From Macrostomum lignano (lineage: Eukaryota): 30,306 nucleotides of DNA. Shown here piece by piece: positions 693 to 22,907 of this stretch; position 1 is the first letter of the stretch; each line of letters starts with the position of its first letter. Both the position numbers and the translations under genes were made by a program. The stretch spans positions 1-30,306 of the forward strand of contig NIVC01003850.1 in assembly GCA_002269645.1 (NCBI GenBank), read 5' to 3'. The notes beneath the pieces were generated by a model. That model saw only the letters and a list, made by a program, of their open reading frames with translations. It was not told the DNA's origin and searched no databases.

Positions 693-866
693 GAGATGCT
701 GAAGCTCATTGGAGACCTGCGCCAAACTGTGCAGCAGCAAGAGGAGGAGATGGAGGAGCGGGAGATGCGCATTAGACGCGAGCTCATTGCCGAACGGGAC
801 CGGCTGATGAGCGAGGTGGAGGAGCGATTTGAGCAGCAGCTTCAGGAGCAGAAGGAGCTGCAAGAG
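693..866 (+). CDS. Gene 1 exon, KIF20-like stalk start (58 codons)
   Basis: ctgcag|GAG ATG ... CAA GAG|gtacgt, phase 0/0. Confidence 0.8.
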
Positions 867-3800
867 GTACGTTGTGATATAACTGAGCAATGCTATTCCA
901 AGATTCTTCAATTATTTTGTAGTTTCAAAATCTGCCATTTTGTAGTTTCAGAATCTGCCATTTTGTAGTTTCAGAATCTGCCATTTTGTAGTTTCAGTAT
1001 CTGCCATTTTGTAGATTCAGAATCTGCCATTTTGTAGTTTCAGAATCTGCCATTTTGTAGTTTCAGAATCTGCCATTTTGTAGTTTCAGAATCTGCCATT
1101 TTGTAGTTTCAGAATCTGCCATTTTGTAGTTTCAGAATCTGCCATTTTGTAGTTTCAGAATCTGCCATTTTGTAGTTTCAGAATCTGCCATTTTGTAGTT
1201 TCAGAATCTGCCATTTTGTAGTTTCAGAATCTGCCATTTTGTAGTTTCAGAATCTGCCGTTTTGTAGTTTCAGTATCTGCCATTTTGTAGATTCAGAATC
1301 TGCCATTTTGTAGATTCAGAATCTGCCATTTTTGTAGCTAAAATCTGCCATTTTGTAGTTAAATCTGCCATTTTGTAGTTAAATCTGCCATTTTGTAGAT
1401 TCAAAATCTGCCATTTTGTAGATTCAAAATCTGCCATTTTGTAGATTCAAAATCTGCCATTTTGTAGTTAAATCTGCCATTTTGTAGATTCAAAATCTGC
1501 CATTTTGTAGTTAAATCTGCCATTTTGTAGATTCAAAATCTGCCATTTTGTAGTTAAATCTGCCATTTTGTAGTTAAATCTGCCATTTTGTAGTTAAATC
1601 TGCCATTTCGTGTTAAAATCTGCCATTTCTATTCCTTTTCCTAGAGTCTAGCGATTGAATTCTTAAAATTTGCCTCTGACATTGATTTATAACTACTAAA
1701 CCATTCCCCATTGACCCTTGCAGGAGCGCCACGACACCCGCCTGCGCGAGTACCTGGACACTTCCCAGCGGATCAGCGACAACCTGAAGAAGCGCATGGT
1801 TGAGGCTCACAAACGCAAGCTGGCCGAACTGCAAGCAAAAATCGATAGATTAGAAGAGCAACTTGGCGAGGCCAGGTCGGAGGCTGAGCAGCAAGATGAG
1901 CAGTTGGAAAATTTGAATAATAAAGTTGAGAAATTGGAGATGGAGCTGGCCGCTGCTCAGAGCGTCTCCACTAAAGAGGCCATCGAAGCCGAAGTAAACA
2001 TTCGAGTCAGGAGAATCGGCGATATGCACAGGCGGCTAGCGGAGTCTGCAGATATCAGCAGCCTGGCCAGGTCGCACCCGCCTCCGCCCACCAATCAGCA
2101 CCGGTCTGCAATGCGGGCCACTCTGCTTAAGAACGACTCGTTTCTGGTTCACGAGCTGGAGGCTGAACTGGTTGAAGAGCAGGAGAACCGAGAGCGACAG
2201 GTAGGCGCCATGACTGCCACGCTGGCCTGCTCACAGGAGATGCTGGATGGACTCAGGATGGAGCGAGAATTGCTGGCTGAGGAGTTGAAGACTGCACGGC
2301 TGACTGTTGAGGAGCAGGTGAGGGGAACTGGCTTGAGAATAGAGTTGAATTGGAGATTGAGTGTGAGATTAGATGGTAGATACACAGATGCAGAGACCAG
2401 ATAGGGAGATAGGAGAGGAGAGAGTCGATACGGGGGATATAGAAGGGAAATGCGAGAGCGGTTTGGGCGAAGGGAGATATGAGATGGGAGAAGGAAGATA
2501 GGAGAGGAGAGAAGGGAGATAGGAGAGGGGAGAAGGGAGATAGGAGAAGGGAGATATGAGATGGGAAAGGGAGATAGGAGATGGTAGAGGGGAGAGCGGA
2601 GATGGGAGAGGAGGAGAAGGTAGACACGAGGAACAGTCAAAGCATATGAATGACTCTCTCTGAAAATGCACCACTTGCACCCAGGCGGAAACCATCAGCC
2701 AGTTAAGGAGTCGCATCGAAGCCCTCGGGCATGCCGAACAAGGATCAGAGCCCGCTGCTAAATCTGCCGATGCCATAGACAATGAAGCTTATACTGCTAA
2801 GAACATTGAATCCGATCAAAGCTGCTGCCAAATGGCTAACGAGCATTTGAAAGAGGCTGCTAAGGCTGATGTTGATCTAGAGGAAAGAGTTGAATGCGTG
2901 AGTGATCACTACCGTGTTGCTTAGATATTTGGTTTTCGTATTAATATTCTTATGCATTGACGATGTTCATGAGAAGTGCTCAGTGGCTGGGAGATAGAAT
3001 TGGGTAGATACCGTAGCTAAATGCTTAATACATAATTAAGACTCGTGGAAGAGATGTAGAAAGGGTGATCTAGTCCAATAAGCAATAGTTTGTTAAAGAA
3101 GAATACGCTTTCTTCTTTGAAGAATCTCCGTTTCAAATTTCTATTCTTTAATCATTTGCCAGCTCGTCCAGAAACTCCGCGAAGAAATGGCCGATTCCAA
3201 GGCTAAGGACGCCAAACTAGAAGAGATGAATGAGCAAGTTCTACGAATTAGCTCGCAGGCTGAGGCCCAGTTGCAGCAGGTATGATACTTATACTAACGA
3301 TATACTACTTATGGCAGTATTATAGGGCTTTGGCTGCTGCCAGCCTCCCAGATCCCCAGTTGCTGGACCACCAGCCTCCCAGATCCTCAGTTGCTGGGCC
3401 AGCCTCCCAGATCCTCAGTTGCTGGGCCACCAGCCTCCCAGATCCTCAGTTGCTGGACCACCAGCCTCCCAGATCCTCAGTTGCTGGGCCAACAGCCTCC
3501 CAGATCCTCAGTTGCTGGGCCAGCCTCCCAGATCCTCAGTTGCTGGGCCAGCCTCCCAGATCCTCAGTTGCTGGGCCAGCCTCCCAGATCCTCAATTGCT
3601 GGGCCAACAGCCTCCCAGATCCTCAATTGCTGGGCTACCAGCCTCCCAGATCCTCAGTTGCTGGGCTACCAGCCTCCCAGATCCTCAATTGCTGGGCCAA
3701 CAGCCTCCCAGATCCTCAATTGCTGGGCTACCAGCCTCCCAGATCCTCAGTTGCAGGGCCACCAGCCTCCCAGATCCTCAATTGCTGGGCCAACAGCCTC

Positions 3801-6800
3801 CCAGATCCCCAGTTGCTGGGCCACCAGCCTCCCAGATCCCCAGTTGCTGGGCCACCAGCCTCCCAGATCCTCAGTTGCTGGGCCAGCCTCCCAGATCCCC
3901 AGTTGCAGGGCCACCAGCCTCCCAGATCCTCAATTGCTGGGCCAACAGCCTCCCAGATCCCCAGTTGCTGGCCACCAGCCTCCCAGATCCCCAGTTGCTG
4001 GGCCACCAGCCTCCCAGATCCTCAGTTGCTGGGCCATCAGCCTCCCAGATCCTCAGTTGCTGGGCCAGCCTCCCAGATCCCCAGTTGCTGGGCCACCAGC
4101 CTCCCAGATCCCCAGTTGCTGGGCCACCAGCCTCCCAGATCCCCAGTTGCTGGGCCACTAGCCTCCCAGATCCTCAGTTGCTGGGCCAGCCTCCCAGATC
4201 CCCAGTTGCTGGGCCACCAGCCTCCCAGATCCCCAGTTGCTGGGCCACCAGCCTCCCAGATGCTTAACTTTCATTACTAACATTAGGCTCAAGTAAAATG
4301 CTTTTTCGTCTCTGAACGCCTGCTTCAGCTCAATCAACAGCTGCTGGAGCTGAAAGACCAGCTGGAATCTTCTCAGAGCGGAGTTGATGCCTCTAGCAAA
4401 TCATCAGATTTAGTGAGCTCATTTTTTCAATTACTGATCAATAAAATGATTTATATACAGAAACTCTAGGCAACACCCATTAGTTGATATTTTTAGCAAA
4501 CCTGAAAATTGCTGAAATATAAGGATTTTCAAAAAACCCGAAAATTAGCCGAAAATTTAAGGATTTTCAACAGAACCGACAAATTGCCAAATACGAAAAC
4601 TTGATAAGCGAATAGAAGTGGTTAGCAAATTAGTGCTATTGAAGTATTACAAATATATTATTAGCCTCAGTAAAATAATTGAGCCATTTTGAACATTCAT
4701 TTCAGCTAAATCAGCAGCTAGCCCAACTCCAGTCGCAATTGGCAGAAAAGTCACGTGACAGTGATAAGCTCTCTATCGAACTGAATGAGACGGTGAGCAA
4801 GCGTGTGGGAGTTGGGGCTCTTCTCTTATTTTTTATCAACTTATTGTTTTTCATTGAAGGTTGAGAAGCTCCGCCAGTCTGAAGCGAAGTTGGAGTCCAT
4901 TTCGGCGGAGTCCTCAGCAAAGGATGAGCAGCTGCTGGAGCTTCAGCGTCGGCTGGATGAAGCTGAGTCGGAAGCTGAGAATCAGCTTAAGCAGGTGAGT
5001 TTAAGAAAATGAGCTTTAGACAGGGTGTCAGATGGGAGACAGGGTGTCAGATATGGGAACAGGGTGTCAAATAGGAAACAGGGTGTCAGATATAAGATCA
5101 GGTGTCAGATATGGGAACAGGGTGTCAGATGGGAGACAGGGTGTCAGATGTTAAACAGGGTGTCAGATGTTAAACAGGGTGTCAGATGTTAAACAGGGTG
5201 TCAGATGTTAAACAGGGTGTCAGATGTTAAACAGGGTGTCAGAAGGGAGACAGGGTGTCAGATGTTAAACAGGGTGTCAGATGTTAAACAGGGTGTCAGA
5301 TGTTAAACAGGGTGTCAGATGTTAAACAGGGTGTCAGATGTTAAACAGGGTGTCAGATGGGAAACAGGGTGTCAGATGCGAAACAGTGTGTCAGATATCG
5401 GAACAGGGTGTCAGATATGGGATCAGGTGTCAGATATAGGATCATGGTGTCAGGTATTGGATCAGGTGTCAGATATGGTATCAGGTGTCAGATTTGGGAT
5501 CATGGTGTCAGATATGGGATCAGGTGTCAGATGTGGGAACAGGCTGTCAGATATGGGATCAGGTGTCAGATATAGGATCAGGTGTCAGATGTGGGAACAG
5601 GGTGTCAGATGCAGATGCAATTTTGAACATTCATTTCAGCTAAATCAGCAGCTAGCCCAACTCCAGTCGCAATTGGCAGAAAAGTCACGTGACAGTGATA
5701 AGCTCTCTATCGAACTGAATGAGACGGTAAGCAAGCGTGTGGGAGTTGGGGCTCTTCTCTTATTTTTTATCAACTTATTGTTTTTCATTGAAGGTTGAGA
5801 AGCTCCGCCAGTCTGAAGCGAAGTTGGAGTCCATTTCGGCGGAGTCCTCAGCAAAGGATGAGCAGCTGCTGGAGCTTCAGCGACGGCTGGATGAAGCTGA
5901 GTCGGAAGCTGAGAATCAGCTTAAGCAGGTGAGTTGAAGAAAATTAGCTTTAGGCAGGGTGTCAGATGGAAAACAGGGTGTCAGATGGAAAACAGGGTGT
6001 CAGATATTCAGACAGTGTGTCAGATGGGAGACAGGGTGTCAGATAAAAAAAGGTGTCAGATATAGGATCTGGTGTCAAATATGGGAACAGGGTGTCAGAT
6101 GGAAAACAGGGTGTCAGATGCAATTTTGAACATTCATTTCAGCTAAATCAGCAGCTAGCCCAACTCCAGTCGCAATTGGCAGAAAAGTCACGTGACAGTG
6201 ATAAGCTCTCTATCGAACTGAATGAGACGGTAAGCAAGCGTGTGGGAGTTGGGACTCGTCTCTTATTTTTTATCAACTTATTGTTTTTCATTGAAGGTTG
6301 AGAAGCTCCGCCAGTCTGAAGCGAAGTTGGAGTCCATTTCGGCGGAGTCCTCAGCAAAGGATGAGCAGCTGCTGGAGCTTCGGCGTCGGCTGGATGAAGC
6401 TGAGTCTGAAGCTGAGAATCAGCTTAAGCAGGTGAGCTTAAGAAAATGAGCTTTAGACGGGGTGTCAGATGGGAGACAGTGTGTCAGATATGCAGACAGG
6501 GTGTCAGATAAAAAAGGTGTCAGATATAGGATCTGGTGTCAGATATGGGAACAGGGTGTCAGATGGGAAACAGGGTGTCAGATGGGAAACAGGGTGTCAG
6601 ATGGGAAACAGGGTGTCAGATGGGAGACAGGGTGTCAGATATGGGAACAGGGTGTCAAATGGGAAACAGGGTGTCAGATATAAGATCAGGTGTCAGATAT
6701 GGGAACAGGGTGTCAGATGTTAAACAGGGTGTCAGATGTTAAACAGGGTGTCTGATGTTAAACAGGGTGCCAGATGTTAAACAGGGTGTCAGATGTTAAA

Positions 6801-9800
6801 CAGGGTGTCAGATGTTAAACAGGGTGTCAGATGGGAAACAGGGTGTCAGATGCGAAACAGTGTGTCAGATATCGGAACAGGGTGTCAGATATGGGATCAG
6901 GTGTCAGATATAGGATCATGGTGTCAGGTATTGGATCAGGTGTCAGATATAGGATCAGGTGTCAGATATGGTATCAGGTGTCAGATTTGGGATCATGGTG
7001 TCAGATATGGGATCAGGTGTCAGATGTGGGAACAGGCTGTCAGATATGGGATCAGGTGTCAGATATAGGATCAGGTGTCAGATGTGGGAACAGGGTGTCA
7101 GATGCAGATGCAATTTTGAACATTCATTTCAGCTAAATCAGCAGCTAGCCCAACTCCAGTCGCAATTGGCAGAAAAGTCACGTGACAGTGATAAGCTCTC
7201 TATCGAACTGAATGAGACGGTAAGCAAGCGTGTGGAGTTGGGGCTCTTCTCTTATTTTTTATCAACTTATTGTTTTTCATTGAAGGTTGAGAAGCTCCGC
7301 CAGTCTGAAGCGAAGTTGGAGTCCATTTCGGCGGAGTCCTCAGCAAAGGATGAGCAGCTGCTGGAGCTTCAGCGTCGGCTGGATGAAGCTGAGTCGGAAG
7401 CTGAGGATCAGCTTAAGCAGGTGAGTTTAAGATAATGAGCTTTAGGCAGGGTGTCAGATGGAAAACAGAGTGTCAGATAAAGGAACAGGGTGTCAGATAT
7501 AAGATCAGGTGTCAGATATGGGAACAGGGTGTCAGATAGGAGACAGGGTGTCAGATGTTAAACAGGGTGTCAGATGTTAAACAGGGTGTCAGATGGGAAA
7601 CAGGGTGTCAGATGGGAGACAGGGTGTCAGATGTTAAACAGGGTGTCAGATGTGGGATCAGGTGTCAGATATGGGAACAGGGTGTCAGATATGGGAACTG
7701 GTGTCAGATATAGGATCAGGTGTCAGATATGGTATCAGGTGTCAGATTTGGGATCATGGTGTCAGATATGGGATCAGGTGTCAGATGTGAGAACAGGCTG
7801 TCAGATATGGGATCAGGTGTCAGATGGGAAACAGGGTGTCAGATGGGAGACAGGGTGTCAGATGGAAAACAGGGTGTCAGATAAAGGAACAGGGTGTCAG
7901 ATAAAGGAACAGGGTGTCAGATGGGAAACAGGGTGTCAGATAAAGGAACAGGGTGTCAGATGGGAAACAGGGTGTCAGATGAGAAACAGGCTGTCAGATA
8001 TGGGATCAGGTGTCAGATGGGAAACAGGGTGTCAGATGGGAGACAGGGTGTCAGATGGAAAACAGGGTGTCAGATGGAAAACAGGGTGTCAGATAAAGGA
8101 ACAGGGTGTCAGATAAAGGAACAGGGTGTCAGATGGGAAACAGGGTGTCAGATAAAGGAACAGGGTGTCAGATGGGAAACAGGGTGTCAGATGAGAAACA
8201 GGCTGTCAGATATGGGATCAGGTGTCAGATGGGAAACAGGGTGTCAGATGGGAGACAGGGTGTCAGATGGAAAACAGGGTGTCAGATAAAGGAACAGGGT
8301 GTCAGATAAAAGAACAGGGTGTCAGATGGGAAACAGGGTGTCAGATGAGAAACAGGGTGTCAGATTTGGGATCAGGTGTCAGATATGGGAACAGGGTGTC
8401 AGATATGGGATCATGGTGTCAGATGGAAAACAGGGTGTCAGATAAAGGAACAGGGTGTCAGATGGGAAACAGGGTGTCAGATAAAGGAACAGGGTGTCAG
8501 ATAAAGGAACAGGGTGTCAGATGGGAAACAGGGTGTCAGATGAGAAACAGGCTGTCAGATATGGGATCAGGTGTCAGATGGGAAACAGGGTGTCAGATGG
8601 GAGACAGGGTGTCAGATGGAAAACAGGGTGTCAGATAAAGGAACAGGGTGTCAGATAAAAGAACAGGGTGTCAGATGGGAAACAGGGTGTCAGATGAGAA
8701 ACAGGGTGTCAGATGTGGGATCAGGTGTCAGATATGGGAACAGGGTGTCAGATGTGGGATCAGGTGTCAGATGTGGGATCAGGTGTCTGATATTGGATCA
8801 GGTGTCAGATATGGGAACAGGGTGTCAGATGTGGGATCATGGTGTCAGATGGGAAACAGGGTGTCAGATGTGGGATCATGGTGTCAGATGGGAAACAGGG
8901 TGTCAGATGTGGGATCATGGTGTCAGATGGGAAACAGGGTGTCAGATGTGGGATCATGGTGTCAGATGGGAAACAGGGTGTCAGATGTGGGATCATGGTG
9001 TCAGATGGGAAACAGGGTGTCAGATGGGAGACAGGGTGTCAGATGGGAAACAGGGTGTCAGATGTGGGATCATGGTGTCAGATGGGAAACAGGGTGTCAG
9101 ATGTGGGATCATGGTGTCAGATGAAAAACAGGGTGTCAGATGTGGGATCATGGTGTCAGATGGGAAACAGGGTGTCAGATGTGGGATCATGGGGTCAGAT
9201 GGGAAACAGGGTGTCAGATGTGGGATCATGGTGTCAGATGGGAAACAGGGTGTCAGATGTGGGATCATGGTGTCAGATGGGAAACAGGGTGTCAGATGTG
9301 GGATCATGGTGTCAGATGGGAAACAGGGTGTCAGATGTGGGATCATGGTGTCAGATGGGAAACAGGGTGTCAGATGTGGGATCATGGTGTCAGATGGGAA
9401 ACAGGGTGTCAGATGTGGGATCATGGTGTCAGATGGGAAACAGGGTGTCAGATGTGGGATCAGGTGTCAGATATGGGAACAGGGTGTCAGATGTGGGATC
9501 AGGTGTCAGATATGGGAACAGGGTGTCAGATATGGGATCATGGTGTCAGATGTGGGATCAGGTGTCTGATATTGGATCAGGTGTCAGATATGGGTACAGG
9601 GTGTCAGATATAGGATCTGGTGTCAGATATGAAAACAGGGTGTCAGATGGGAAACAGGGTGTCAGATGAGAAACAGGGTGTCAGATGTGGGATCAGGTGT
9701 CAGATATGGGAACAGGGTGTCAGATGTGGGATCATGGTGTCAGATGGGAAACAGGGTGAGACATATGAAATATTAAAAAATTAAAAAAACCTGAAAATTA

Positions 9801-11528
9801 CCAATGAGGATTTTCAACGATTCAGAAAAGTTTCCGAAATGTAAGTATCCTAAACAAACCTGAAAAATTGCTGAACTCTGAGGATTTTCGGGAAACCCGA
9901 AAAATTGCTGAAATCTTAGGATTTTCAAGAAACCCGAAAAATTGCTGAACTCTGAGGATTTTCAACAAACACAAAAAATTGCTGCAAATCTGAGGATTTT
10001 AACAAACCCGAAAAATTGCTGCAAATCTGAGGATTTTAACAAACCCGAAAAATTGCTGCAAATCTGAGAATTTTAACAAACCCGAAAAATTGCTGCAAAT
10101 CTGAGGATTTTAACAAACCCGAAAAATTGCCGAAATAGGTGGATTTTCAACAGACCCCAAAATTTGCCGAAATATAAGGATTTTCAACACACCCGAAAAA
10201 TTGCCAAAAAGGAGGATTTTCAAGAAACCTGAAAAATTACCAAATACGAAAACTTGATAAGCGAATAGAAGTGGTTAGCAAATTAGTGCTATTAAAGTAT
10301 TACAAATATATTATTAGCCTCAGTAAAATAATTGAGCCATTTTGAACATTCATTTCAGCTAAATCAGCAGCTAGCCCAACTCCAGTCGCAATTGGCAGAA
10401 AAGTCACGTGACAGTGATAAGCTCTCTATCGAACTGAATGAGACGGTAAGCAAGCGTGTGGGAGTTGGGACTCGTCTCTTATTTTTTATCAACCTATTGT
10501 TTTTCATTGAAGGTTGAGAAGCTCCGCCAGTCTGAAGCGAAGTTGGAGTCCATTTCGGCGGAGTCCTCAGCAAAGGATGAGCAGCTGCTGGAGCTTCGGC
10601 GTCGGCTGGATGAAGCTGAGTCTGAAGCTGAGAATCAGCTTAAGCAGGTGAGCTTAAGAAAATGAGCTTTAGACGGGGTGTCAGATGGGAGACAGGGTGT
10701 CAGATATGCAGACAGTGTGTCAGATGGGAGACAGGGTGTCAGATGGGAGACAGGGTGTCAGATAAAAAAAGGTGTCAGATATAGGATCTGGTGTCAGATA
10801 TGGGAACAGGGTGTCAGATGGGAAACAGGGTGTCAGATGTTAAACAGGGTGTCAGATATGGAAACAGGGTGTCAGATGGGAAACAGGGTGTCAGATGGGA
10901 AACAGGGTGTCAGATGCGAAACAGGGTGTCAGATGCGAAACAGTGTGTCAGATATCGGAACAGGGTGTCAGATATCGGAACAGGGTGTCAGATGGGAGAC
11001 AGGGTGTCAGATGTTAAACAGGGTGTCAGATGGGAGACAGGGTGTCAGATGTTAAACAAAGTGTCAGATGGGAAACAGGGTGTCTGATGAAAAACAGGGT
11101 GTCAGATGGGAAACAGGGTGTCAGATGGGAAACAGGGTGTCAGATGAAAAACAGGGTGTCAGATGGGAAACAGGGTGTCAGATGGGAAACGGTGTTAGAT
11201 GGGAAACGGGGTGTCAGATGGGAAACAGGGTGTCAGATGGGTAACAGGGTGTCAGATGGGAAACGGTGTTAGATGGGAAACAGGGTGTCAGATGGGAAAC
11301 AGGGTGTCAGATGGGAAACAGAGTGTCCGATATGGGAACAGGGTGTCACATATGGGAACAGGGTGTCCGATATGGGAACATGGTGTCAGATGGGAACAGG
11401 GTGTCCGATATGGGAACATGGTGTCACATATGGGAAACAGTGTGTCACATCTGGGAACATATGGTAACTTATCCCAAAAAAGTCTGATAATAGCTCGTAT
11501 TAACTAACTCGAGCGTCTTCGTCTTCTT

Positions 11529-11585
<57 letters not shown>

Positions 11586-14500
11586 ATCGGCCTTTTCTGT
11601 TTTAGTACATTTTTTTTAAATGACTGTATTTTTGTTTTGGCCTGTCCATCCTAGTTTCTTTTCTGTCTGACTTTCATTTAACTTGTCTTAGTAGGCTTGT
11701 ACATGCTTGTTCCGGAAAAATGATTTATGATTTCGTTTTCCGCTCGCTATCTTCTGTTTATAGAATTTATGTTTTTTTGTAATTTTTGCAGGTTCGCTCT
11801 TAGCAGAAATGAAATCCCATGTTTAATTTATACTTGTTAAACTTATTAAATTTATTCGCATATATTTCCACAATTCTAGCTCCGAGATGAGCTAGTTGCT
11901 GGGCAAGTCAAGCTCGATGCAAAGGAAACTGAGCTGAATGAACTGCGGCAGCAAATTGCAAACAAAGAAGCCGAAAATGCTGAGAAAATTCATTCGGTGA
12001 GTGCTCTGTAGTCCCACCCCTGTACCACACAGCTAGTCCCACCCCTGTACCACACAGCTAGTCCCACCCCTGTACCACACAGCTAGTCCCACCCCTGTAC
12101 CACACAGCTAGTCCCACCCCTGTACCACACAGCTAGTCCCACCCCTGTACCACACAGCTAGTCCCACCCCTGTATCACACAGCTAGTCCCACCCCTGTAC
12201 CACACAGCTAGTCCCACCCCTGTACCACACAGCTAGTCCCACCCCTGTATCACACAGCTAGTCCCAGCCCTGTACCACACAGCTAGTCCCAGCCCTGTAC
12301 CACACAGCTAGTCCCACCCCTGTACCACACAGCTAGTCCCACCCCTGTACCACACAGCTAGTCCCATCCCTGTACAAACAGCTAGTCCCACCCCTGTACC
12401 ACACAGCTAGTCCCACCCCTGTACCACACAGCTAGTCCCACCCCTGTACCACACAGCTAGTCCCATCCCTGTACCACAGCTAGTCTCACCTCTGTACAAA
12501 CAGCTAGTCCCACCCCTGTACAAACAGCTAGTCCCAACCCTGTACAAACAGCTAGTCCCACCCCTGTATCACACAGCTAGTCCCACCCCTGTACCACACA
12601 GCTAGTCCCACCCCTGTACCACACAGCTAGTCCCATCCCTGTACAAACAGCTAGTCCCACCTCTGTACCACACAGCTAGTCCCATCCCTGTACAAACAGC
12701 TAGTCCCATCCCTGTACAAACAGCTAGTCCCACCTCTGTACCACACAGCTAGTCCCATCCCTGTACAAACAGCTAGTCCCACCTCTGTACCACACAGCTA
12801 GTCTCACCTCTGTACAAACAGCTAGTCCCACCCCTGTACAAACAGCTAGTCCCAACCCTGTACAAACAGCTAGTCCCACCCCTGTACAAACAGCTAGTCC
12901 CATCCCTGTACAAACAGCTAGTCCCACCCCTGTACAAACGGCTAGTCCCAACCCTGTACAAACAGCTAGTCCCACCCTTGTACAAACAGCTAGTCCCATC
13001 CCTGTACAAACAGCCAGTAAGCATTTTTTTGTACTGTTTCTCCTAAGCTCTATAATAGTCCATGCTTTGATCTCAACAGCTGGAGCAACAACTGGAGCTT
13101 GAATCAGTTGCATCTATTGAAAAAGATCAGTTACTGATTGATTTAAAGCAGCGCCTCTCCGTGAACAATACGGACTCTGAAGAAAGGATAACGTTGGTAA
13201 ATAAAAAAATCACAACTAAATTTGTAGACTAGTTCGCATTTTGTCTACTGTAAGTAAAAACATACGAAAACTAAATTATTTTATTACAGCTCCAAGAGCA
13301 ACTATCAGCGGATACAGATACTATTCAAGCCAAACAAAATCAGATTAATGAGCTGAAAGAGCAGTTAGCTCAACGTTCGAAAGAAACTAGCCAGCTCATC
13401 CAGGCTGTGAGTCTTATTATGTACATTTCATAGCCTTGATTTGTGCCCTGAGGGTTGGCCATCAAGCTGGGCGTTAATTGCACGAGCAGAGCCAAGCCGA
13501 GATTCCGATTTTAAGCCCCAAAAATTAATGTGACTGCACTTGAAATCGAGCCTAAGCTGCTGGCACCGGGGTTTGTAGCCTAGTGATTAGAGCGTCGGAC
13601 TGACGACCTGAAGGTCGGGGGTTCGATTCCACTTGGAACAATTTGTGTCCTTGAGCAGCTTAACTCTGCATTGCTTCAGTTCACCCAGCTGTAAAATGGG
13701 TTGCCAGCATTCGCTGGAGGTAATTGAGGGTGTGTGTGGCGACCCCCCCCCCCTCAATCTTAGACGCAATAATTAAGACTCAACAACTCCAACTCACTCT
13801 TCATAGTCGGAGAACCGTGCAACCGCTGCCGAGGCAGAAGCTGAGGTTGCGAGACGCAACGTAGCGGACTTGCAGGGCCGTTTAGAAGTGCTCAAACGCG
13901 ACCTGGAGGATGAGAAGGACGCGTATAGGCGCAAATTAGAAGAGCGCCGGCTTGAAAGTCGGCGAAATCTTGAAGCGGCCGAGAATAACAGGCTGGCCGA
14001 ACGAGCCAAGGCCCAACGGGAGTTGGAGGCCGAGATGGCTAAGGTGGCCAGCCTTCATTTGGATAACGCTAAGCTCCAGGATAAAATCGAGCAGCTCCAG
14101 TTGCCGCCGCCGCCGCCGCCGCCGCGTTTGTCGTCAAGAGCTTCGACTTGCTCGACGACATCCGCCACTGTGAAAGCGGGTACTAAACGGCAGCGGGTTA
14201 GGGTGAGTTCCCTTTGGTTTTTTTTAATTTAAAAATTCAAAAATTTGAACTTTAGGGAGTTTTAGTTCTTTGTTTCTTCGAAAAGAGATTTATTAATCTG
14301 CGTTCCTTAGAAATGAGATTTATAGATCTGCGTTTCTTGGAAATGCGATTTATTGATCTGCATTTTTTAGAAATGAGATTTATTGATCTGCGTTTCTATC
14401 TGCGTTTCTTAGAAATGAGATTTATAGATTTGCGTTTCTTAGAAATGCGATTTATTGATCTGCATTTCTTAGAAATGAGATTTATAGATCTGCGTTTCTT

Positions 14501-16946
14501 AGAAATGAGATTTATAGATCTGCGTTTCCTAGAAATAAGATTTATTGATCTGCGTTTCTTAGAAATGAGATTTATTGATCTGCGTTTCTTAGAAATGAGA
14601 TTTATTGATCTGCGTTTCTTAGAAAAGAGATTTATTCATCTGCGTTTCTTAGAAATGAGATTTATCGATCTGCGTTTCTTAGAAATGCGATTTATTGATC
14701 TGCGTTTCTTAGAAATAAGTTTTTTATCTGCATTTCTTAGAAATTATATTTATTAATCTGCGTTTCTTAGAAATGCGATTTATCGATCTGCGTTTCTTAG
14801 AAATTAGATTATTAATCTGCGTTTCTTAGAAATGATATTTATTGATCTGCGTTTCTTAGAAATGAGATTCATTAATCTGCGTTCCTTAAAAATTAGATTT
14901 ATTAATCAGCGTTTCTTAGAAATGAGATTTATTGATCTGCGTTTCTTAGAAATGCGATTTATTGATCTGCATTTCGATTTATTGATCTGCGTTTCTTAGA
15001 AATGCGATTTATTGATCAGCGTTTCTTAGATATGAGTTATTAATCTCTGTTTTTGAAATGGAATTAATTGATTTTCATTCTTAGAAAATGAACTTAACGG
15101 ATCCGTGTTTCTTGGAAATTAGAATTTAATGACGTTTTTAGGAATGAACTTGTGGATCTGTATTCATTGGATTCATTCTGTATTCATTGGATGTGCTATT
15201 TATTTATCAGTATTTTCTTCAGTATTAAATATTTGTTAAGACCATGCTTGTGTTTCTTGTAAACAAATTGTATTTAATAAATACATTTGTGTCTAGAAAG
15301 ACAACAGCTTTAATATATTTATGACGGACAATCTGAAACTCTTTTTTTCAGCCTTCTCGATTAACAAGAGATATGATTTTCTCCTCTGAGGAGGACGACA
15401 GCACTGGGGAAATGGACTCGGTGTCGGAGATGTCAACCCCACAGATGTCGACCACGCCGACAACTGGGGATACGGCTGGTAGCTCCGCGCGGCTTTTGCG
15501 CAGCCAAACTGCCGCCAGGACTGCGTATGATGGGTTTGTGGTCTATTGGGTTGCTTTTAGTGTGTCTTTTAGATTCTTTACGTTGGGTTCAGATTCCTCA
15601 GTTTGGGGATTCAGATTCTTCAGGTAGGGTTCAGATTTCTCAGGTTGGGTTCAGATTTCTCAGGTGGGGTTCAGATTCCTCAGGTAGGGTTCAGCTTCCT
15701 CCGGTTGGGGTTCAGATTTCTCAGGTTGGGTTCAGATTCCTCAGATAGGGTTCAGATTCCTCAGATAGGGTTCAGATTTCTCAGTTTGGGGGTTCAGATT
15801 CCTCAGGTAGGGTTCAGATTCCTCAGATAGAGTTCAGATTCCTCAGGTAGAGTTCAGATTCCTCAGGTAGAGTTCAGATTCCTCAGGTAGAGTTCAGATT
15901 CCTCAGGTAGAGTTCAGATTCCTCAGGTAGAGTTTAGATTCCTCAGGTAGAGTTCAGATTCCTCAGGTAGGGTTCAGATTCCTCAGGTAGAGTTCAGATT
16001 CCTCAGGTAGGGTTCAGATTCCTCAGGTAGAGTTCAGATTCCTCAGGTAGGGTTCAGATTCCTCAGGTAGAGTTCAGATTCCTCAGGTAGAGTTCAGATT
16101 CCTCAGGTAGAGTTCAGATTCCTCAGGTAGAGTTCAGATTCCTCAGGTAGAGTTCAGATTCCTCAGGTAGAGTTCAGATTCCTCAGGTAGAGTTCAGATT
16201 CCTCAGGTAGAGTTCAGATTCCTCAGGTAGAGTTCAGATTTCTCAGGTAGAGTTCAGATTCCTCAGGTAGAGTTCAGATTCCTCAGGTAGAGTTTAGATT
16301 CCTCAGGTAGAGTTCAGATTCCTCAGGTAGGGTTCAGATTCCTCAGGTAGAGTTCAGATTCCTCAGGTAGGGTTCAGATTCCTCAGGTAGAGTTCAGATT
16401 CCTCAGGTAGGGTTCAGATTCCTCAGGTAGAGTTCAGATTCCTCAGGTAGGGTTCAGATTCCTCAGGTAGGGTTCAGATTCCTCAGGTAGGGTTCAGATT
16501 CCTCAGGTAGAGTTCAGATTCCTCAGGTAGAGTTCAGATTCCTCAGGTAGAGTTCAGATTCCTCAGGTAGGGTTCAGTTTCCTCAGGTAGGTTATCTATC
16601 TAACACCTCTCGCAGATCCTCTGTGCCCAGTTCTGCACTAACATCCCCGACGGAGCTGACGTCGGCGCCCCAGGCGTCGCAACAGCGGCAGTCGGAGGCC
16701 GCAGCTGCGCCTCAGGTCCCGGCCACAGTTCCTAAGAGGCCAGTCGCTCGGCTTCTTTACGACGAGAGTGCCTACAGGGACTCGTCGCTAATAGAACCTG
16801 TCGAGGGCGTGACGCCGCCGCCTCAGGTGCTGGTGTCCAGCACTTCCAGGCGGGGCACCGCCCGGCTGCCTTCTGGTGCTGCCGCTCTTCTCGCGAGCAG
16901 CAGGGGCGGACGCGGCGGCAGAGGCGGCAGGAAGAAAAAGAATTAA
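693..16946 (+). CDS. KIF20: Gene 1, spliced CDS, 5'-partial: kinesin-6 (KIF20A/B-like) coiled-coil stalk and tail, 1180 aa from 693 to the stop. Exons: 693-866, 1724-2317, 2685-2897, 3163-3279, 4329-4412, 4706-4792, 4860-4994, 5640-5726, 5794-5928, 6143-6229, 6297-6431, 7133-7219, 7286-7420, 10359-10445, 10513-10647, 11880-11996, 13080-13196, 13290-13406, 13807-14202, 15352-15524, 16616-16946
   Basis: All exons are AG/GT-flanked and join in frame without stops (3543 nt). EMLKLIGDLRQTVQQQEEEMEEREMRIRRELIAERDRLMSEVEERFEQQLQEQKELQEERHDTRL aligns ungapped with the KIF20A post-motor segment as I recall it (ELLQVVEAMK...LEMHLRDEICNEMVEQMQQREQWCSEHLDTQKELLEEMYEEKL). No motor domain lies in the window, so the family call comes from memory and needs BLAST. 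Confidence 0.65.
915..1629. repeat. Intronic minisatellite, 23-bp ATCTGCCATTTTGTAGTTTCAGA with a 20-bp variant in the 3' part
   Basis: Direct inspection. Confidence 0.95.
1724..2317 (+). CDS. Gene 1 exon, coiled coil (198 codons)
   Basis: cccttgcag|GAG ... GAG CAG|gtgagg; E/K/L/Q/R-rich heptads. Confidence 0.85.
2400..2625. repeat. Purine-rich low-complexity tract (GGAGAAGGGAGATA-like)
   Basis: Direct inspection; intronic. Confidence 0.8.
2685..2897 (+). CDS. Gene 1 exon (71 codons, AETISQLRSRIEALG...DLEERVEC)
   Basis: gcacccag|GCG ... GAA TGC|gtgagt; open frame missed by the ORF track. Confidence 0.8.
3163..3279 (+). CDS. Gene 1 exon, 39-codon module
   Basis: tttgccag|CTC ... CAG CAG|gtatga; LVQKLREEMADSKAKDAKLEEMNEQVLRISSQAEAQLQQ. 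Confidence 0.85.
3338..4262 (+). repeat. Intronic minisatellite, ~27-31-bp CCAGCCTCCCAGATCCTCAGTTGCTGGG(CCA)
   Basis: Direct inspection; reverse complement at 24052-24527. Confidence 0.95.
4329..4412 (+). CDS. Gene 1 exon (28 codons)
   Basis: tgcttcag|CTC ... GAT TTA|gtgagc; LNQQLLELKDQLESSQSGVDASSKSSDL. Confidence 0.8.
4497..4590. repeat. Short array of ~37-bp AAACCCGAAAAATTGCTGAAAT..GGATTTTC units
   Basis: Same family as 9780-10240. Confidence 0.7.
4706..4994 (+). CDS. Gene 1 duplicated exon pair, copy 1 (A 4706-4792, B 4860-4994)
   Basis: A = LNQQLAQLQSQLAEKSRDSDKLSIELNET, B = VEKLRQSEAKLESISAESSAKDEQLLELQRRLDEAESEAENQLKQ; 67-bp GT-AG intron. Confidence 0.85.
5640..5928 (+). CDS. Gene 1 duplicated exon pair, copy 2 (A 5640-5726, B 5794-5928)
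   Basis: Same peptide as copy 1; splice sites intact. Confidence 0.75.
6143..6431 (+). CDS. Gene 1 duplicated exon pair, copy 3 (A 6143-6229, B 6297-6431)
   Basis: Q>R change (CAG>CGG) in B; splice sites intact. Confidence 0.75.
7133..7420 (+). CDS. Gene 1 duplicated exon pair, copy 4 (A 7133-7219, B 7286-7420)
   Basis: N>D change in B; 66-bp internal intron; splice sites intact. Confidence 0.75.
9780..10240. repeat. ~37-bp minisatellite AAACCCGAAAAATTGCTGCAAATCTGAGGATTTTAAC
   Basis: Direct inspection. Confidence 0.9.
10359..10647 (+). CDS. Gene 1 duplicated exon pair, copy 5 (A 10359-10445, B 10513-10647)
   Basis: Shares the copy-3 variants; upstream flank shared with copy 1. Confidence 0.8.
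11529..11584. repeat. (TCTG)14 microsatellite
   Basis: Direct inspection. Confidence 0.95.
11880..11996 (+). CDS. Gene 1 exon, 39-codon module
   Basis: aattctag|CTC ... CAT TCG|gtgagt; LRDELVAGQVKLDAKETELNELRQQIANKEAENAEKIHS. Confidence 0.85.
12009..13016. repeat. 24-25-bp minisatellite GTCCCACCCCTGTACCACACAGCTA
   Basis: Direct inspection. Confidence 0.95.
13080..13196 (+). CDS. Gene 1 exon, 39-codon module
   Basis: ctcaacag|CTG ... ACG TTG|gtaaat; LEQQLELESVASIEKDQLLIDLKQRLSVNNTDSEERITL. Confidence 0.85.
13290..13406 (+). CDS. Gene 1 exon, 39-codon module
   Basis: tattacag|CTC ... CAG GCT|gtgagt; LQEQLSADTDTIQAKQNQINELKEQLAQRSKETSQLIQA. Confidence 0.85.
13442..13566 (+). repeat. Dispersed repeat fragment, copy 1
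   Basis: AATTGCACGAGCAGAGCCAAGCCGAGATTCC core matches the reverse complement of 28791-28910. Confidence 0.8.
13568..13753 (+). mobile_element. tRNA-derived SINE with CORE-like central domain, copy 1
   Basis: A box TAGCCTAGTGATTAG, B box GGTTCGATTCC, then TGTGTCCTTGAGCAGCTTAACTCT...CAGTTCACCCAGCTGTAAAATGGG, which resembles the MIR/CORE domain; second copy at 27857. Confidence 0.8.
13807..14202 (+). CDS. Gene 1 exon, end of coiled coil plus poly-Pro (132 codons)
   Basis: cttcatag|TCG ... GTT AGG|gtgagt. Confidence 0.85.
14285..15050. repeat. 30-bp minisatellite AGAAATGAGATTTATTGATCTGCGTTTCTT
   Basis: Direct inspection. Confidence 0.95.
15352..15524 (+). CDS. Gene 1 exon, acidic Ser/Thr-rich tail
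   Basis: ttttttcag|CCT ... ACT GC|gtatga (phase 2); a second in-frame donor GG|gtttgt at 15534 is possible. Confidence 0.75.
15585..16590. repeat. 20-bp minisatellite (A/G)GTTCAGATTCCTCAGGTAG
   Basis: Direct inspection. Confidence 0.95.
16616..16946 (+). CDS. Gene 1 last coding exon, ending RGGRGGRGGRKKKN*
   Basis: ctctcgcag|A TCC TCT GTG ... AAT TAA; phase 2 matches the upstream donor. Confidence 0.8.
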
Positions 16947-16984: not shown

Positions 16985-18260
16985 TTGATAACTGGGTTTT
17001 GATAACTGAATAAGGGATTTGATGACTGTGTCAGGGGTTTGATAACTGGGTCAATGATTTGATAACTGGGTCAGGGATTTTGATAACTGGGTCAGTGATT
17101 TGGTATCTGAGTCAGTGATTTGATAACTGGGTCAATGATTTGATAACTGGGTCAGGGATTTTGATAACTGGGTCAGTGATTTGGTATCTGAGTCAGTGAT
17201 TTGATAACTGGGTCAGTGATTTGGTATCTGAGTCAGTGATTTGATAACTGGGTCAGTGATTTGGTATCTGAGTCAGTGATTTGATAACTGGGTCAGTGAT
17301 TTGGTATCTGAGTCAGTGATTTGATAACTGGGTCAGTGATTTGGTATCTGAGTCAGTGATTTGATAACTGGGTCAGTGATTTGGTATCTGAGTCAGTGAT
17401 TTGATAACTGGGTCAGTGATTTGGTATCTGAGTCAGTGATTTGATAACTGGGTCAGTGATTTGGTATCTGAGTCAGTGATTTGATAACTGGGTCAGTGAT
17501 TTGGTATCTGAGTCAGTGATTTGATAACTGGGTCAGTGATTTGGTATCTGAGTCAGTGATTTGATATCTGGGTCAGTGATTTGGTATCTGAGTCAGTGAT
17601 TTGATAACTGGGTCAGTGATTTGGTATCTGAGTCAGTGATTTGGTATCTGAGTCAGTGATTTGATAACTGGGTCAGTGATTTGGTATCTGAGTCAGTGAT
17701 TTGATATCTGGGTCAGTGATTTGGTATCTGAGTCAGTGATTTGATAACTGGGTCAGTGATTTGGTATCTGAGTCAGTGATTTGGTATCTGAGTCAGTGAT
17801 TTGATAACTGGGTCAGTGATTTGGTATCTGAGTCAGTGGTTTGATAGCTGGGTCAGTGATTTGGTATTTGAGTCAGTGATTTGATAACTGGGTCAGTGGT
17901 TTGGTATCTGAGTCAGTGATTTGATATTTGAGTCAGTGATTTGATAACTGGGTCAGTGATTTGGTATCTGAGTCAGTGATTTGATAACTGGGTCAGTGAT
18001 TTGGTATCTGAGTCAGTGATTTGATAACTGGGTCAGTGATTTGGTATCTGAGTCAGTGATTTGATAACTGGGTCAGTGATTTGGTATCTGAGTCAGTGAT
18101 TTGATAACTGGGTCAGTGATTTGGTATCTGAGTCAGTGATTTGATAACTGGGTCAGTGATTTGGTATCTGAGTCAGTGATTTGATAACTGGGTCAGTGAT
18201 TTGGTATCTGAGTCAGTGATTTGATAACTGGGTCAGTGATTTGGTATCTGAGTCAGTGAT
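16985..18260. repeat. 20-bp satellite organised as 40-bp dimers (GGGTCAGTGATTTGGTATCT / GAGTCAGTGATTTGATAACT)
   Basis: Direct inspection. Confidence 0.95.
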
Positions 18261-18764
18261 TTTGTGTAAAAAACAGTTAAATGAGCGCAGTGAATTGCAA
18301 TTATTCTATTTGTATTATATTCAACCTGTACTGTATATTGACAAGTTTATTTTTTATAATCCTTTATACGCGAATCTGTTATTGCTAGCTTTAAAAACGT
18401 ATGCCAAGATTTTGTGCCATGCTGCAAGTTTAGTTTCGTATATGACGGGGTAAAAATTTGAAATTTCTATGGTTAAAAGTCACCCTGACTGGAGACTGCC
18501 TTAGAAACAGACTAGTAGCGATAAAATTAGCTTTCCAAGTCAGTCAAGCTTGAGGCAGAACTCTATAGACAAAAACTTGATTCTATTATTATTTTAGTCT
18601 GTGGCCTAACCTTCAGCTATGTACATAGTCTGTCTTATCTAGACTGCAAGTCCATCTGTCTATGGCTAAGAATTTTGTGTGACGTGAATTTTGGTTAGGT
18701 GTGTACAAGAAATTTTACTCCAAACAAACTTAGTAGTAAATCGATTGCATTTCATTAGTTTATA

Positions 18765-19108: not shown

Positions 19109-19434
19109 TATTTTGTATTAAATTTATTAATTATTTTTGCTACCTTAGAAATAAGTCAATTTAGCTTTTAATTATCATTGCTTGTAGAATTAAAACAATC
19201 TTTAACATCCCATATTATAATTATAATTGCATTTTTTGTTTTAAAACGTGTTCGAAAAAGAAAATCTGTAGTTTTTTGTTTGTTATTTTCGGTTTAATTA
19301 TTTCATTTCACCATTCGATTGCCTTGCATATTGAATTTAGACTGAAAGAGATACACGTAAGAATGTGTGAGACATATGCTAGATTGTTTCAGATATACGT
19401 TATCCTAAGGTGAAATATAGTGTAAACTAGGATG

Positions 19435-22310
19435 AGATTAAGAGGTTAGACTAGGGTAGGGTAGGGGGTTAGACTAGGGTGAGATAGAGGTTAGACTACG
19501 GTGAGATAGAGGTTAGACTAGGGTGAGAGGTTAGACTAGGGTGAGATAGAAGGGAGATTGAAATGAGATAGTAGTTAGACTAGTTTGAGATATAGGTTAG
19601 ACTAGGGTGAGATAGAGGTTAGACTAGGGTGAGATAGAGGTTAGACTAGGGTGAGATGCAGGTTAAACTAGGGTGAGATAGAGGGGAGAATGGAAGGAGA
19701 TAGTAGTTAGACTAGGGTGAGATAGAGGTTAGACTAGGGTGAGATGCAGGTTGAACTAGGGTGAGATAGAGGGGAGAATGGAAGGAGATAGTAGTTAGAC
19801 TAGGGTGAGATAGAGGTTAGACTAGGGTGAGATAGAGGTTAGACTAGGGTGAGATGCAGGTTAAACTAGGGTGAGATAGAGGGGAGAATGGAAGGAGATA
19901 GTAGTTAGACTAGGGTGAGATAGAGGTTAGACTAGGGTGAGATGCAGGTTGAACTAGGGTGAGATAGAGGGGAGAATGGAAGGAGATAGTAGTTAGACTA
20001 GGGTGAGATAGAGGTTAGACTAGGGTGAGATAGAGGTTAGACTAGGGTGAGATGCAGGTTAAACTAGGGTGAGATAGAGGGGAGAATGGAAGGAGATAGT
20101 AGTTAGACTAGGGTGAGATAGAGGTTAGACTACGGTCAGATGAGTTTAGACTAGGGTGAGATAGAGGGGAGAATGGAAGGAGATAGTAGTTAGACTAGGG
20201 TGAGATAGAGGGGAGAATGGAAGGAGATAGTAGTTAGACTAGGGTGAGATAGAGGGGAGAATGGAAGGAGATAGTAGTTAGACTAGGGTGAGATAGAGGT
20301 TAGACTAGGGTGAGATGCAGGTTAAACTAGGGTGAGATAGAGGGGAGAATGGAAGGAGATAGTAGTTAGACTAGGGTGAGATAGAGGTTAGACTACGGTC
20401 AGATGAGTTTAGACTAGGGTGAGATAGAGGGGAGAATGGAATGAGATAGTAGTTAGACTAGGGTGAGATAGAGGTTAGACTACGGTCAGATGAGTTTAGA
20501 CTAGGGTGAGATAGAGGTTAGACTAGGGTGAGATAGAGGGGAGAATGGAATGAGATAGTAGTTAGACTAGGGTGAGATAGAGGTTAGACTAGGGTGAGAT
20601 AGAGGGGAGAATGGAATGAGATAGTAGTTAGACTAGGGTGAGATAGAGGTTAGACTAGGGTGAGTTAGAGGGAGAATGGAATGAGATAGTAGTTAGACTA
20701 GGGTGAGATAGAGGTTAGACTAGGGTGAGATAGAGGGGAGAATGGAAGGAGATAGTAGTTAGACTAGGGTGAGATAGAGGTTAGACTAGGGTGAGATAGA
20801 GGGGAGAATGGAATGAGATAGTAGTTAGACTAGGGTGAGATAGAGGTTAGACTAGGGTGAGATGCAGGTTAAACTAGGGTGAGATAGAGGGGAGAATGGA
20901 AGAAGATAGTAGTTAGACTAGGGTGAGATAGAGGTTAGACTACGGTCAGATGAGTTTAGACTAGGGTGAGATAGAGGTTAGACTACGGTCAGATGAGTTT
21001 AGACTAGGGTGAGATAGAGGGGAGAATGGAATGAGATAGTAGTCAGACTAGAGTGAGATAGAGGTTAGACTAGGGTGAGATGCAGGTTGAACTAGGGTGA
21101 GATAGAGGGGAGAATGGAAGGAGATAGTAGTTAGACTAGGGTGAGATAGAGGTTAGACTAGGGTGAGATAGAGGTTAGACTAGGGTGAGATGCAGGTTAA
21201 ACTAGGGTGAGATAGAGGGGAGAATGGAAGGAGATAGTAGTTAGACTAGGGTGAGATAGAGGTTAGACTAGGGTGAGATGCAGGTTGAACTAGGGTGAGA
21301 TAGAGGGGAGAATGGAAGGAGATAGTAGTTAGACTAGGGTGAGATAGAGGTTAGACTAGGGTGAGATAGAGGTTAGACTAGGGTGAGATGCAGGTTAAAC
21401 TAGGGTGAGATAGAGGGGAGAATGGAAGGAGATAGTAGTTAGACTAGGGTGAGATAGAGGTTAGACTACGGTCAGATGAGTTTAGACTAGGGTGAGATAG
21501 AGGGGAGAATGGAAGGAGATAGTAGTTAGACTAGGGTGAGATAGAGGGGAGAATGGAAGGAGATAGTAGTTAGACTAGGGTGAGATAGAGGGGAGAATGG
21601 AAGGAGATAGTAGTTAGACTAGGGTGAGATAGAGGTTAGACTAGGGTGAGATGCAGGTTAAACTAGGGTGAGATAGAGGGAGAATGGAAGGAGATAGTAG
21701 TTAGACTAGGGTGAGATAGAGGTTAGACTACGGTCAGATGAGTTTAGACTAGGGTGAGATAGAGGTTAGACTAGGGTGAGATAGAGGGGAGAATGGAATG
21801 AGATAGTAGTTAGACTAGGGTGAGATAGAGGTTAGACTAGGGTGAGATAGAGGGAGAATGGAATGAGATAGTAGTTAGACTAGGGTGAGATAGAGGTTAG
21901 ACTAGGGTGAGTTAGAGGGGAGAATGGAATGAGATAGTAGTTAGACTAGGGTGAGATAGAGGTTAGACTAGGGTGAGATAGAGGGGAGAATGGAAGGAGA
22001 TAGTAGTTAGACTAGGGTGAGATAGAGGTTAGACTAGGGTGAGATAGAGGGGAGAATGGAATGAGATAGTAGTTAGACTAGGGTGAGATAGAGGTTAGAC
22101 TAGGGTGAGATGCAGGTTAAACTAGGGTGAGATAGAGGGGAGAATGGAAGAAGATAGTAGTTAGACTAGGGTGAGATAGAGGTTAGACTACGGTCAGATG
22201 AGTTTAGACTAGGGTGAGATAGAGGGGAGAATGGAATGAGATAGTAGTCAGACTAGAGTGAGATAGAGGTTAGACTAGGGTGAGATAGAGGTTAGACTAG
22301 GATGAGATGG
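19435..22310. repeat. Purine-rich intergenic satellite, 22-bp base unit GACTAGGGTGAGATAGAGGTTA plus longer variant units
   Basis: Direct inspection; ~1.2-kb higher-order duplication. Confidence 0.95.
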
Positions 22311-22907
22311 AGGTGGTGTTTTCACTTCTTATTAAGTATATGACTAGCAGTCTAATCACTAGTAGAGGACATATTTTGCTTGCTCGATTAAAACTGCTGA
22401 CCTAATCATAGGATTTTTCGATTCAATAAAAAATCACTTTGGCATTGTCAATAATTTTTTGTGAATCGGTTTTGACTGACTTGCTATTTTGATTGTTGCA
22501 TGCTGTAGTCAGAGCGAAGAATAAAACAACAGGTGAAATTCTGATTTGGATCGAATGCACCTCTCGACTTGGATATCAGAACATAAAAATCAACCGAAAA
22601 ATCTTGTCAACTAGAAATAAATAATTTATTGGCAAAGGCAGGTGTCTTTTAAACACTACTGATTGAAAATTGGGTTGATCAGTAGTATAATCATAAATCA
22701 TGATTTGAGCTATCTGCTTGGCTCAGCATAAACAGTCGGGGGGGGGGTTGCAGATTGCAAAATTTCTGTATAAATTTGTTGGCCCCAGGAATCCAGATTT
22801 GCCTCTTGAGTTGTGCTAGCAAAGTTGTCTTTGGATCAGTGTTTCACCTTGACAACTTGGAATTTGGATAGCGACAAATATAGCTCTTCATTCTGTGCGA
22901 ATTGAAG

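Follow-up and report, generated by a model that had tools for sequence, protein, structure and literature searches.

Tandem in-frame copies of a stalk-exon pair in a KIF20-type kinesin-6 gene of Macrostomum lignano, probably amplified together with intronic satellites

We analysed a stretch of 30,306 nucleotides of Macrostomum lignano DNA (hereafter the window; contig NIVC01003850.1, positions 1 to 30,306 of the forward strand), in which the gene for a KIF20-type kinesin-6 carries five tandem copies of a pair of exons in the part that encodes the stalk of the motor protein. With a probability of roughly 0.65, the array represents a young, satellite-driven tandem amplification of two stalk exons, of which the copy-number differences are tolerated and largely neutral and do not serve a regulated tuning of stalk length. 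The window was compared with two other contigs of the same assembly (Mlig_3_7, GCA_002269645.1), namely the near-identical contig NIVC01002474.1 (L002) and the contig NIVC01002757.1 (L001), which carries a homeolog of the gene. The copy number differs among these gene copies: five pairs were found in the window, seven in L002, and one exon A with at least 13 exons B in L001. The variation in copy number that had been envisaged in the initial annotation of the window thus exists between gene copies. Three gene models are referred to below: P0001, the NCBI model on L002; P0003, the NCBI model on L001; and P0005, an ab initio UniProt model of M. lignano.

Each pair in the window consists of exon A (87 nt) and exon B (135 nt), which are separated by an intron of 66–67 nt (66 nt in pair 4), and both exons are present in five copies on the forward strand. 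The five copies of exon A are identical to one another, and five identical 87-mers cannot have arisen by chance. Relative to copy 1 of exon B, copy 2 has the synonymous change T90A (CGT>CGA), copies 3 and 5 have A86G (Q>R) together with the synonymous G111T, and copy 4 has A121G (N>D); the pairs differ at 0–2 of 222 nt. All ten exons are bordered by AG and GT, have a length that is a multiple of three, and are in phase 0. A spliced model that includes all five pairs has an open frame up to the stop codon at 16944–16946, and the junction peptide predicted for the B>A boundary is ...AENQLKQLNQQLAQ... No additional copy of exon A or B was detected on either strand of the window. The five in-frame pairs, their intact splice sites and phase, and the differences listed in the initial annotation were all confirmed to the base. 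It had further been claimed that any subset of copies could be skipped without a frameshift. This holds for the pairs, which are in phase 0, but is not peculiar to them, because all stalk exons from 702 to 14202 are in phase 0/0.

The inter-pair introns (645, 214, 701, and 2938 nt in order) consist almost wholly of a 19-nt satellite, CAGGGTGTCAGATGGGAAA, which is found again after the last pair. A 37-nt satellite is located upstream of pair 1 and again upstream of pair 5, in both cases followed by the same unique flank. The array is composed of the following features.

4498–4593, no strand: 37-nt satellite upstream of pair 1, also found upstream of pair 5
4706–4994, + strand: pair 1 (A 4706–4792, 67-nt intron, B 4860–4994)
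5020–5611, no strand: 19-nt satellite in the intron between pairs 1 and 2
5640–5928, + strand: pair 2 (A 5640–5726, B 5794–5928 with the synonymous T90A)
5955–6120, no strand: 19-nt satellite between pairs 2 and 3
6143–6431, + strand: pair 3 (A 6143–6229, B 6297–6431 with Q>R and one synonymous change)
6460–7104, no strand: 19-nt satellite between pairs 3 and 4
7133–7420, + strand: pair 4 (A 7133–7219, 66-nt intron, B 7286–7420 with N>D)
7447–9758, no strand: 19/39-nt satellite of about 119 units between pairs 4 and 5
9805–10238, no strand: 37-nt satellite, then the unique flank as before pair 1
10359–10647, + strand: pair 5 (A 10359–10445, B 10513–10647 with Q>R and one synonymous change)
10676–11447, no strand: 19-nt satellite after the last pair

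Unique non-coding DNA of L002 is 99.7% identical to that of the window (16 mismatches in 4906 nt), and the exons differ at 2 of 1920 nt. The L002 array contains seven intact pairs, which together are open over 514 codons. Units 1–5 of the window correspond one-to-one and in order to units 3–7 of L002, as judged from the unit-specific variants and the spacer lengths (645/626, 214/214, 701/739, and 2938/2694 nt in the window/L002). Over a 334-nt core, units 1 and 2 of L002 are identical to its unit 7 and to unit 5 of the window; unit 2 of L002 has lost 12 nt in frame. The long upstream flank, made up of the 37-nt satellite and unique DNA, precedes the first and the last unit of either array, and the internal units begin just 20 nt upstream of exon A, at the junction of satellite and unique DNA. 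Because the unit order, the variants, the spacers, and the flank pattern are common to both contigs, the comparison shows a five-unit core that apparently predates the split between the window and L002, after which units were presumably gained or lost by unequal exchange. The satellite in the inter-pair introns and the start of the internal units at the satellite junction agree with the earlier claim that the amplification is recent and linked to the satellite. An identity of the window with the L002 contig itself was ruled out by the seven pairs, the differing satellites, and the retention of an exon designated x1 in L002. Exon x1 (LEEQLELELSASMAKDKQ..., 117 nt, phase 0) has intact splice sites in L002 and in L001 (21095–21211), and the window has lost it by a clean 235-bp deletion at 4261/4262, the 3' edge of a 31-nt satellite, which corresponds to L002 12658–12892.

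The gene on L001 (P0003) is a homeolog with a synonymous divergence (dS) of 0.117 and a ratio of nonsynonymous to synonymous divergence (dN/dS) of 0.075. Its exon A is present once and intact, and at least 13 B exons, all of them identical, lie in an array that continues past the sequence examined; one A and 13 B together give 614 codons without a stop. The repeat unit comprises the A–B intron from its position +5, exon B, the 19-nt satellite, and a satellite like the 37-nt one, so that the breakpoint lies inside the A–B intron, unlike that in the window and L002. Since the breakpoints differ, the amplification appears to have arisen independently at the same place in both homeologs. The unit lengths are 609, 650, and 591 bp, then 591, 1008, 869, and 1291 bp twice, and then 591 bp. 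The four 591-bp units are identical, and the twofold series forms a 3759-bp super-repeat (24219–31737) of four units in two copies with one mismatch between them, which reflects either a very recent amplification or a miscount by the assembler. P0003 skips x1 though L001 has this exon, and it ends in the first B exon of L001 with a shifted junction.

A separate observation concerns exon B of L002 unit 5 (16142–16276), which is identical to an exon B of L001 (21778–21912) despite the synonymous divergence of 0.117 between the homeologs. This suggests that an ancestral state was kept under constraint or that the two homeologs have undergone gene conversion with each other.

When databases were searched with the spliced product, matches were obtained only in M. 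lignano, and all of them (P0001–P0005) carry the kinesin motor domains PF00225 and PF16796. Residues 476–1506 of P0001 map to exons of the window, which begins just past the motor at residue 476; the motor itself is encoded further upstream, beyond the window, in contiguous L002 DNA. Comparison of the motor with solved structures gave KIF20A as the best match (8bjs, 5nd2, 8f18; E ~3e-87) in a single stretch (query 64–527), and this alignment spans the whole motor including the long loop-6 insertion. Other kinesin families gave E values no better than 9e-53, and most of them aligned only from about residue 290, past the loop-6 insertion. Since the motor matches KIF20A through loop 6 and the other families are far weaker, the gene is, on this alignment, a KIF20-type kinesin-6, a mitotic-type motor. 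The assignment of the repeated exons to a motor protein in the initial annotation is therefore borne out by the PF00225 domain in the gene models that cover these exons and by the match to KIF20A (E 3e-87). The features of the gene outside the array are as follows.

3–327, + strand: linker exon between motor and stalk (P0001 residues 476–583), with two window-private indels and TGA at 267–269
702–866, + strand: stalk exon (EMLKLIGDL...KELQE), phase 0/0
1724–2317, + strand: stalk exon of 594 nt, phase 0/0
2685–2897, + strand: stalk exon of 213 nt, phase 0/0
3163–3279, + strand: 117-nt (39-codon) stalk exon, one of five of this size, which are older exon duplicates
3340–4261, no strand: 31-nt intronic satellite with the 235-bp deletion at its 3' edge (4261/4262), by which exon x1 was lost
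4329–4412, + strand: exon E5 (LNQQLLELKDQL...), related to exon A as an older, diverged paralogue
11880–11996, + strand: 117-nt stalk exon x2 (LRDELVAGQVKLD...), placed by comparison with P0001
13080–13196, + strand: 117-nt stalk exon
13290–13406, + strand: 117-nt stalk exon
13807–14202, + strand: final coiled-coil exon, which ends in a poly-Pro and Ser/Thr tail
15352–15524, + strand: tail exon
16616–16946, + strand: last coding exon with the stop codon (...GRGGRGGRKKKN*)

Pro and Gly are absent from the 74 residues encoded by a pair, and the residues follow a heptad periodicity. Each pair shifts the heptad register by 4 (74 mod 7), which corresponds to one stutter per pair. AlphaFold2 was run on a single sequence composed of E5, two pairs, and the next exon, and it predicted a continuous helix over residues 21–214 with a predicted confidence score (pLDDT) of ~96; in this monomer model the helix was uninterrupted at the B>A junction and at the junction of B with the next exon. 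These results are in line with the designation of the region as a stalk in the initial annotation, and the repeated exons are predicted to encode a helical stalk, which may form a dimeric coiled coil. The estimate of ~11 nm per pair is fair because the predicted helix is unbroken across the junctions. Pfam gave only sub-threshold coiled-coil noise on the stalk, and a search of 1.84 billion representative proteins with the 74-residue pair detected no homologue outside M. lignano. Five stalk exons, those at 3163–3279, 11880–11996, 13080–13196, and 13290–13406 and x1 of L002, are exactly 117 nt (39 codons) long and in phase 0/0, and they are weakly similar to one another and to exon B. Together with E5 as an old paralogue of exon A, they indicate that the stalk was probably built by earlier rounds of exon duplication.

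The preferred account of the array is as follows. The exons sit between intronic arrays of the 19-nt and the 37-nt satellites, and unequal exchange or replication slippage between these arrays would have led to repeated gain and loss of blocks that include whole exons. In this way the exon pair could have been absorbed into a higher-order repeat of the satellite, and later exchange and gene conversion would keep the copies near-identical by concerted evolution within each array. Default splicing would take in all copies and lengthen the stalk by ~11 nm per pair. The copy-number differences (five, seven, and at least 13 of exon B only) would then be by-products of a satellite-rich and redundant genome. 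Since nearly every intron of the gene holds a satellite, a mutational explanation is sufficient. Simple and tandem repeats account for 15% of the genome of M. lignano, and 180 Mb of the assembly consist of duplicated blocks of at least 95% identity, because the sequenced line has extra large chromosomes (PMC5730564). Almost all introns of the kinesin gene, as well as the DNA downstream of it, contain a long minisatellite of their own with up to ~133 units, and the array lengths differ between the window and L002. In the window these minisatellites are found at 914–1628, 2464–2624, 3340–4261, 12009–13018, 14272–15132, 15587–16590, 16998–18262, and 19391–22314, with periods of 23, 21, 31, 25, 30, 20, 40, and 22 nt, respectively.

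To what extent the individual copies are constrained was estimated from the 12 units of the window and L002. Six substituted sites were counted in 222 coding nt, four of them nonsynonymous and two synonymous, in addition to the one in-frame 12-nt deletion; the adjoining non-coding sequence has eight substituted sites in 112 nt. The difference between exon and intron gave p = 0.08 in Fisher's test, with few differences to compare. The substitutions among the copies thus look neutral, with no sign of constraint on each copy. Among the gene models of M. lignano no B>A junction was found, either in the six matches of a word-indexed search or in the three matches of an exhaustive search with the 74-residue pair. 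P0005 strings three B exons together in the window order Q, Q, R, which supports the genomic order of the B exons, not their splicing. Neither the gene models nor the sequence gave an indication of regulated skipping of pairs, and length tuning by pairs is a possibility, not a finding.

The copy of the gene in the window may itself be a recently disabled duplicate in a highly redundant genome, because it has two private frameshifts and has lost exon x1. In the linker exon at 3–327, 1 nt is deleted near 228 and 2 nt are inserted near 300–302. Both changes are private to the window, and L002 and L001 agree with each other at these positions. As a result, the frame that comes in from the motor stops at the TGA at 267–269. 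Use of a second GTAAGG donor, which lies 8 nt upstream of the annotated donor, would bring the sequence past the 2-nt insertion back into frame, and the 1-nt deletion has no rescue unless the Thr/Ala-rich linker is spliced out. In the ~2.5 kb of unique DNA that precede the array no other indel is present, and the two are therefore more readily taken as genuine mutations than as scattered errors of the consensus.

Several points weigh against a satellite-driven and largely neutral amplification. The frameshifts of the window could after all be consensus errors, and the independent amplification of the same exons in two homeologs could reflect selection instead of a mutational hotspot. A further contrary result is that P0001, which is RNA-seq-based, contains exactly one A+B pair on a contig with seven. 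Such a model is expected if each mRNA contains one pair and the others are skipped, in a mutually exclusive style, or ignored, in which case the array would not lengthen the protein; tandem duplicated exons are indeed often mutually exclusive (PMC9741552). However, P0001 derives from a genome-guided short-read transcriptome (StringTie/TACO) and a collapsed de novo assembly (PMC5730564), and short-read assemblers collapse near-identical tandem repeats and make poor use of multi-mapping reads. Its single pair is weak evidence because the same annotation breaks inside the first B exon of the L001 array, where P0003 has the shifted junction. Moreover, no basis is known on which one copy could be chosen over another when the exons and their strong splice sites are all identical, and the inter-pair introns (214–2938 nt) are of ordinary size. 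It is thus unlikely that only one pair enters each mRNA. An adaptive device, in which the copy number, the alternative inclusion of pairs, or both set the length of the kinesin-6 stalk (~11–55 nm or more) for different cellular contexts, along the lines of the tuning suggested in the initial annotation, is rather improbable as well. All copies are splice-competent and in frame, the predicted helix is continuous, the copy number varies among gene copies, the stalk is already made of older 39-codon exon duplicates, and the exons were apparently amplified independently in two homeologs that are otherwise under strong purifying selection (dN/dS 0.075), all of which would fit such a device. It is not easily reconciled with the lack of a B>A junction in the gene models searched, the neutral look of the substitutions, or the apparent upstream frameshift in the window copy. 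In addition, satellites in nearly every intron make the mutational account enough, and no homologue of the pair was detected outside the species that would mark it as a conserved module. We assign only a small probability to the related view that a longer or variable stalk is advantageous and that this is why amplification occurred independently in two homeologs under purifying selection, giving a natural allelic series of a cytokinesis-type kinesin with stalks that differ by tens of nm.

The array could also be an artefact of assembly, which would have arisen if haplotypes or near-identical duplicates had been joined end to end or if the assembler had run repeatedly through the satellite, the true number of pairs being one or two. 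The genome is redundant and hard to assemble, with only 64% error-free bases according to REAPR (PMC5730564). The near-perfect units of L001 (one mismatch in 3759 bp) are what a looping assembler would give, and a tandem false duplication would leave the same long flank upstream of both the first and the last unit, as is seen here. Furthermore, the window and L002 may be two loci, two haplotypes, or two assemblies of one locus, and the five and seven copies in contigs of 99.7% identity could partly be a disagreement of assembly. Yet two separate contigs share the order of the five units, the unit-specific single-nucleotide variants, and matching spacers, and P0005 independently gives the B order Q, Q, R. 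The spacers between the units differ in length and sequence and would anchor the assembly, and an array of ~6 kb is expected to lie within single PacBio reads. An artefact as an explanation of the whole has a low probability; for the core array in particular it is unlikely on these comparisons, whereas the exact copy numbers are uncertain. The satellite-driven amplification of the exon pair is thus retained as the preferred account.

Other repeats were noticed in the window. A satellite family of ~28–31 nt (CCAGCCTCCCAGATCC.CAGTTGCTGGGCCA) occurs at 3340–4261 on the + strand and in inverted orientation at 24052–24527, 20 kb apart, with one copy in the kinesin gene and the other in the neighbouring gene. 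A short interspersed element is present in two copies of 85.6% identity (13569–13749 and 27857–28038). Its 5' part looks tRNA-derived (GGTTCGATTCC box); ARAGORN called no tRNA. The piece adjoining this element at 13442–13563 is found again, inverted, at 28796–28910. The neighbouring gene (23700–30306, + strand) encodes a cysteine-rich protein of secreted type with VWD, TIL, and ShK domains, which matches M. lignano UniProt entries named 'ShKT domain-containing' at 98–100%.

If all copies are spliced in, the kinesin-6 stalks encoded by the gene copies would differ by ~11 nm per unit and by up to several tens of nm in total. This would provide a natural series in which to test the importance of stalk length to a mitotic or cytokinetic kinesin in vivo, and transgenesis methods have been published for M. 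lignano (PMC5730564). The locus also illustrates the capture of exons by intronic satellites into higher-order repeats, through which a conserved gene can be remodelled in a very short evolutionary time. In addition, short-read gene models, which at this locus have one pair or are truncated, are flagged as unreliable here. Should the copies be unexpressed or the window copy a pseudogene, the array would be one more symptom of a satellite-rich, redundant genome.

Like KIF20A (MKLP2) and KIF20B (MPP1), the M. lignano protein has a motor, which aligns with KIF20A, and behind it a long helical stalk and then a basic tail; its predicted length of ~1.5–1.9 thousand residues is near that of KIF20B. 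It is unlike the family in that its stalk has no detectable homologue outside the species. To our knowledge, no KIF20 with tandemly amplified stalk exons has been described, and our literature search gave nothing relevant on this gene or on KIF20 in Macrostomum. Mutually exclusive tandem exons, such as exon 5 of SNAP25 and those of insect Mhc (PMC9741552, PMC2581893, PMC2257972), are likewise adjacent tandem duplicates of equal length and phase within one gene. However, they are old and diverged and only one of them is used, whereas the M. lignano copies are near-identical. The array was thus rejected as a mutually exclusive exon set in the usual sense, since its copies differ at only 0–2 of 222 nt and exon A is identical throughout. 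Picking one copy would give no diversity, because the copies are virtually the same.

The array resembles satellite higher-order repeats and minisatellites with unequal crossing-over in its monomers with unique inserts, its nested super-repeats (3759 bp twice in L001), its concerted evolution, and the change of copy number between near-identical sequences. It differs from them in its unique insert, which is made up of coding exons that look functional and belong to a conserved motor gene. Multi-exon coding tandem repeats are represented by kringle IV type 2 of LPA (KIV-2), which has a two-exon unit, the triplicate region of NEB, and the SRCR exons of DMBT1. As in LPA, the M. lignano array is a tandem series of units of whole exons, a pair in both genes, which are near-identical, in frame, and splice-competent, and the number of units is not the same in all gene copies and would determine the length of the protein. 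Unlike KIV-2, the M. lignano module encodes the coiled-coil stalk of a motor and not a globular domain, and the introns of its units are satellite arrays; the array is known here from genomic sequence. Whole exons, in frame and with intact splice sites, were found in the window, L002, and L001 alike, and the array is a member of this known class, a real but fairly ordinary exon amplification. Its notable feature is the apparently independent amplification in both homeologs.

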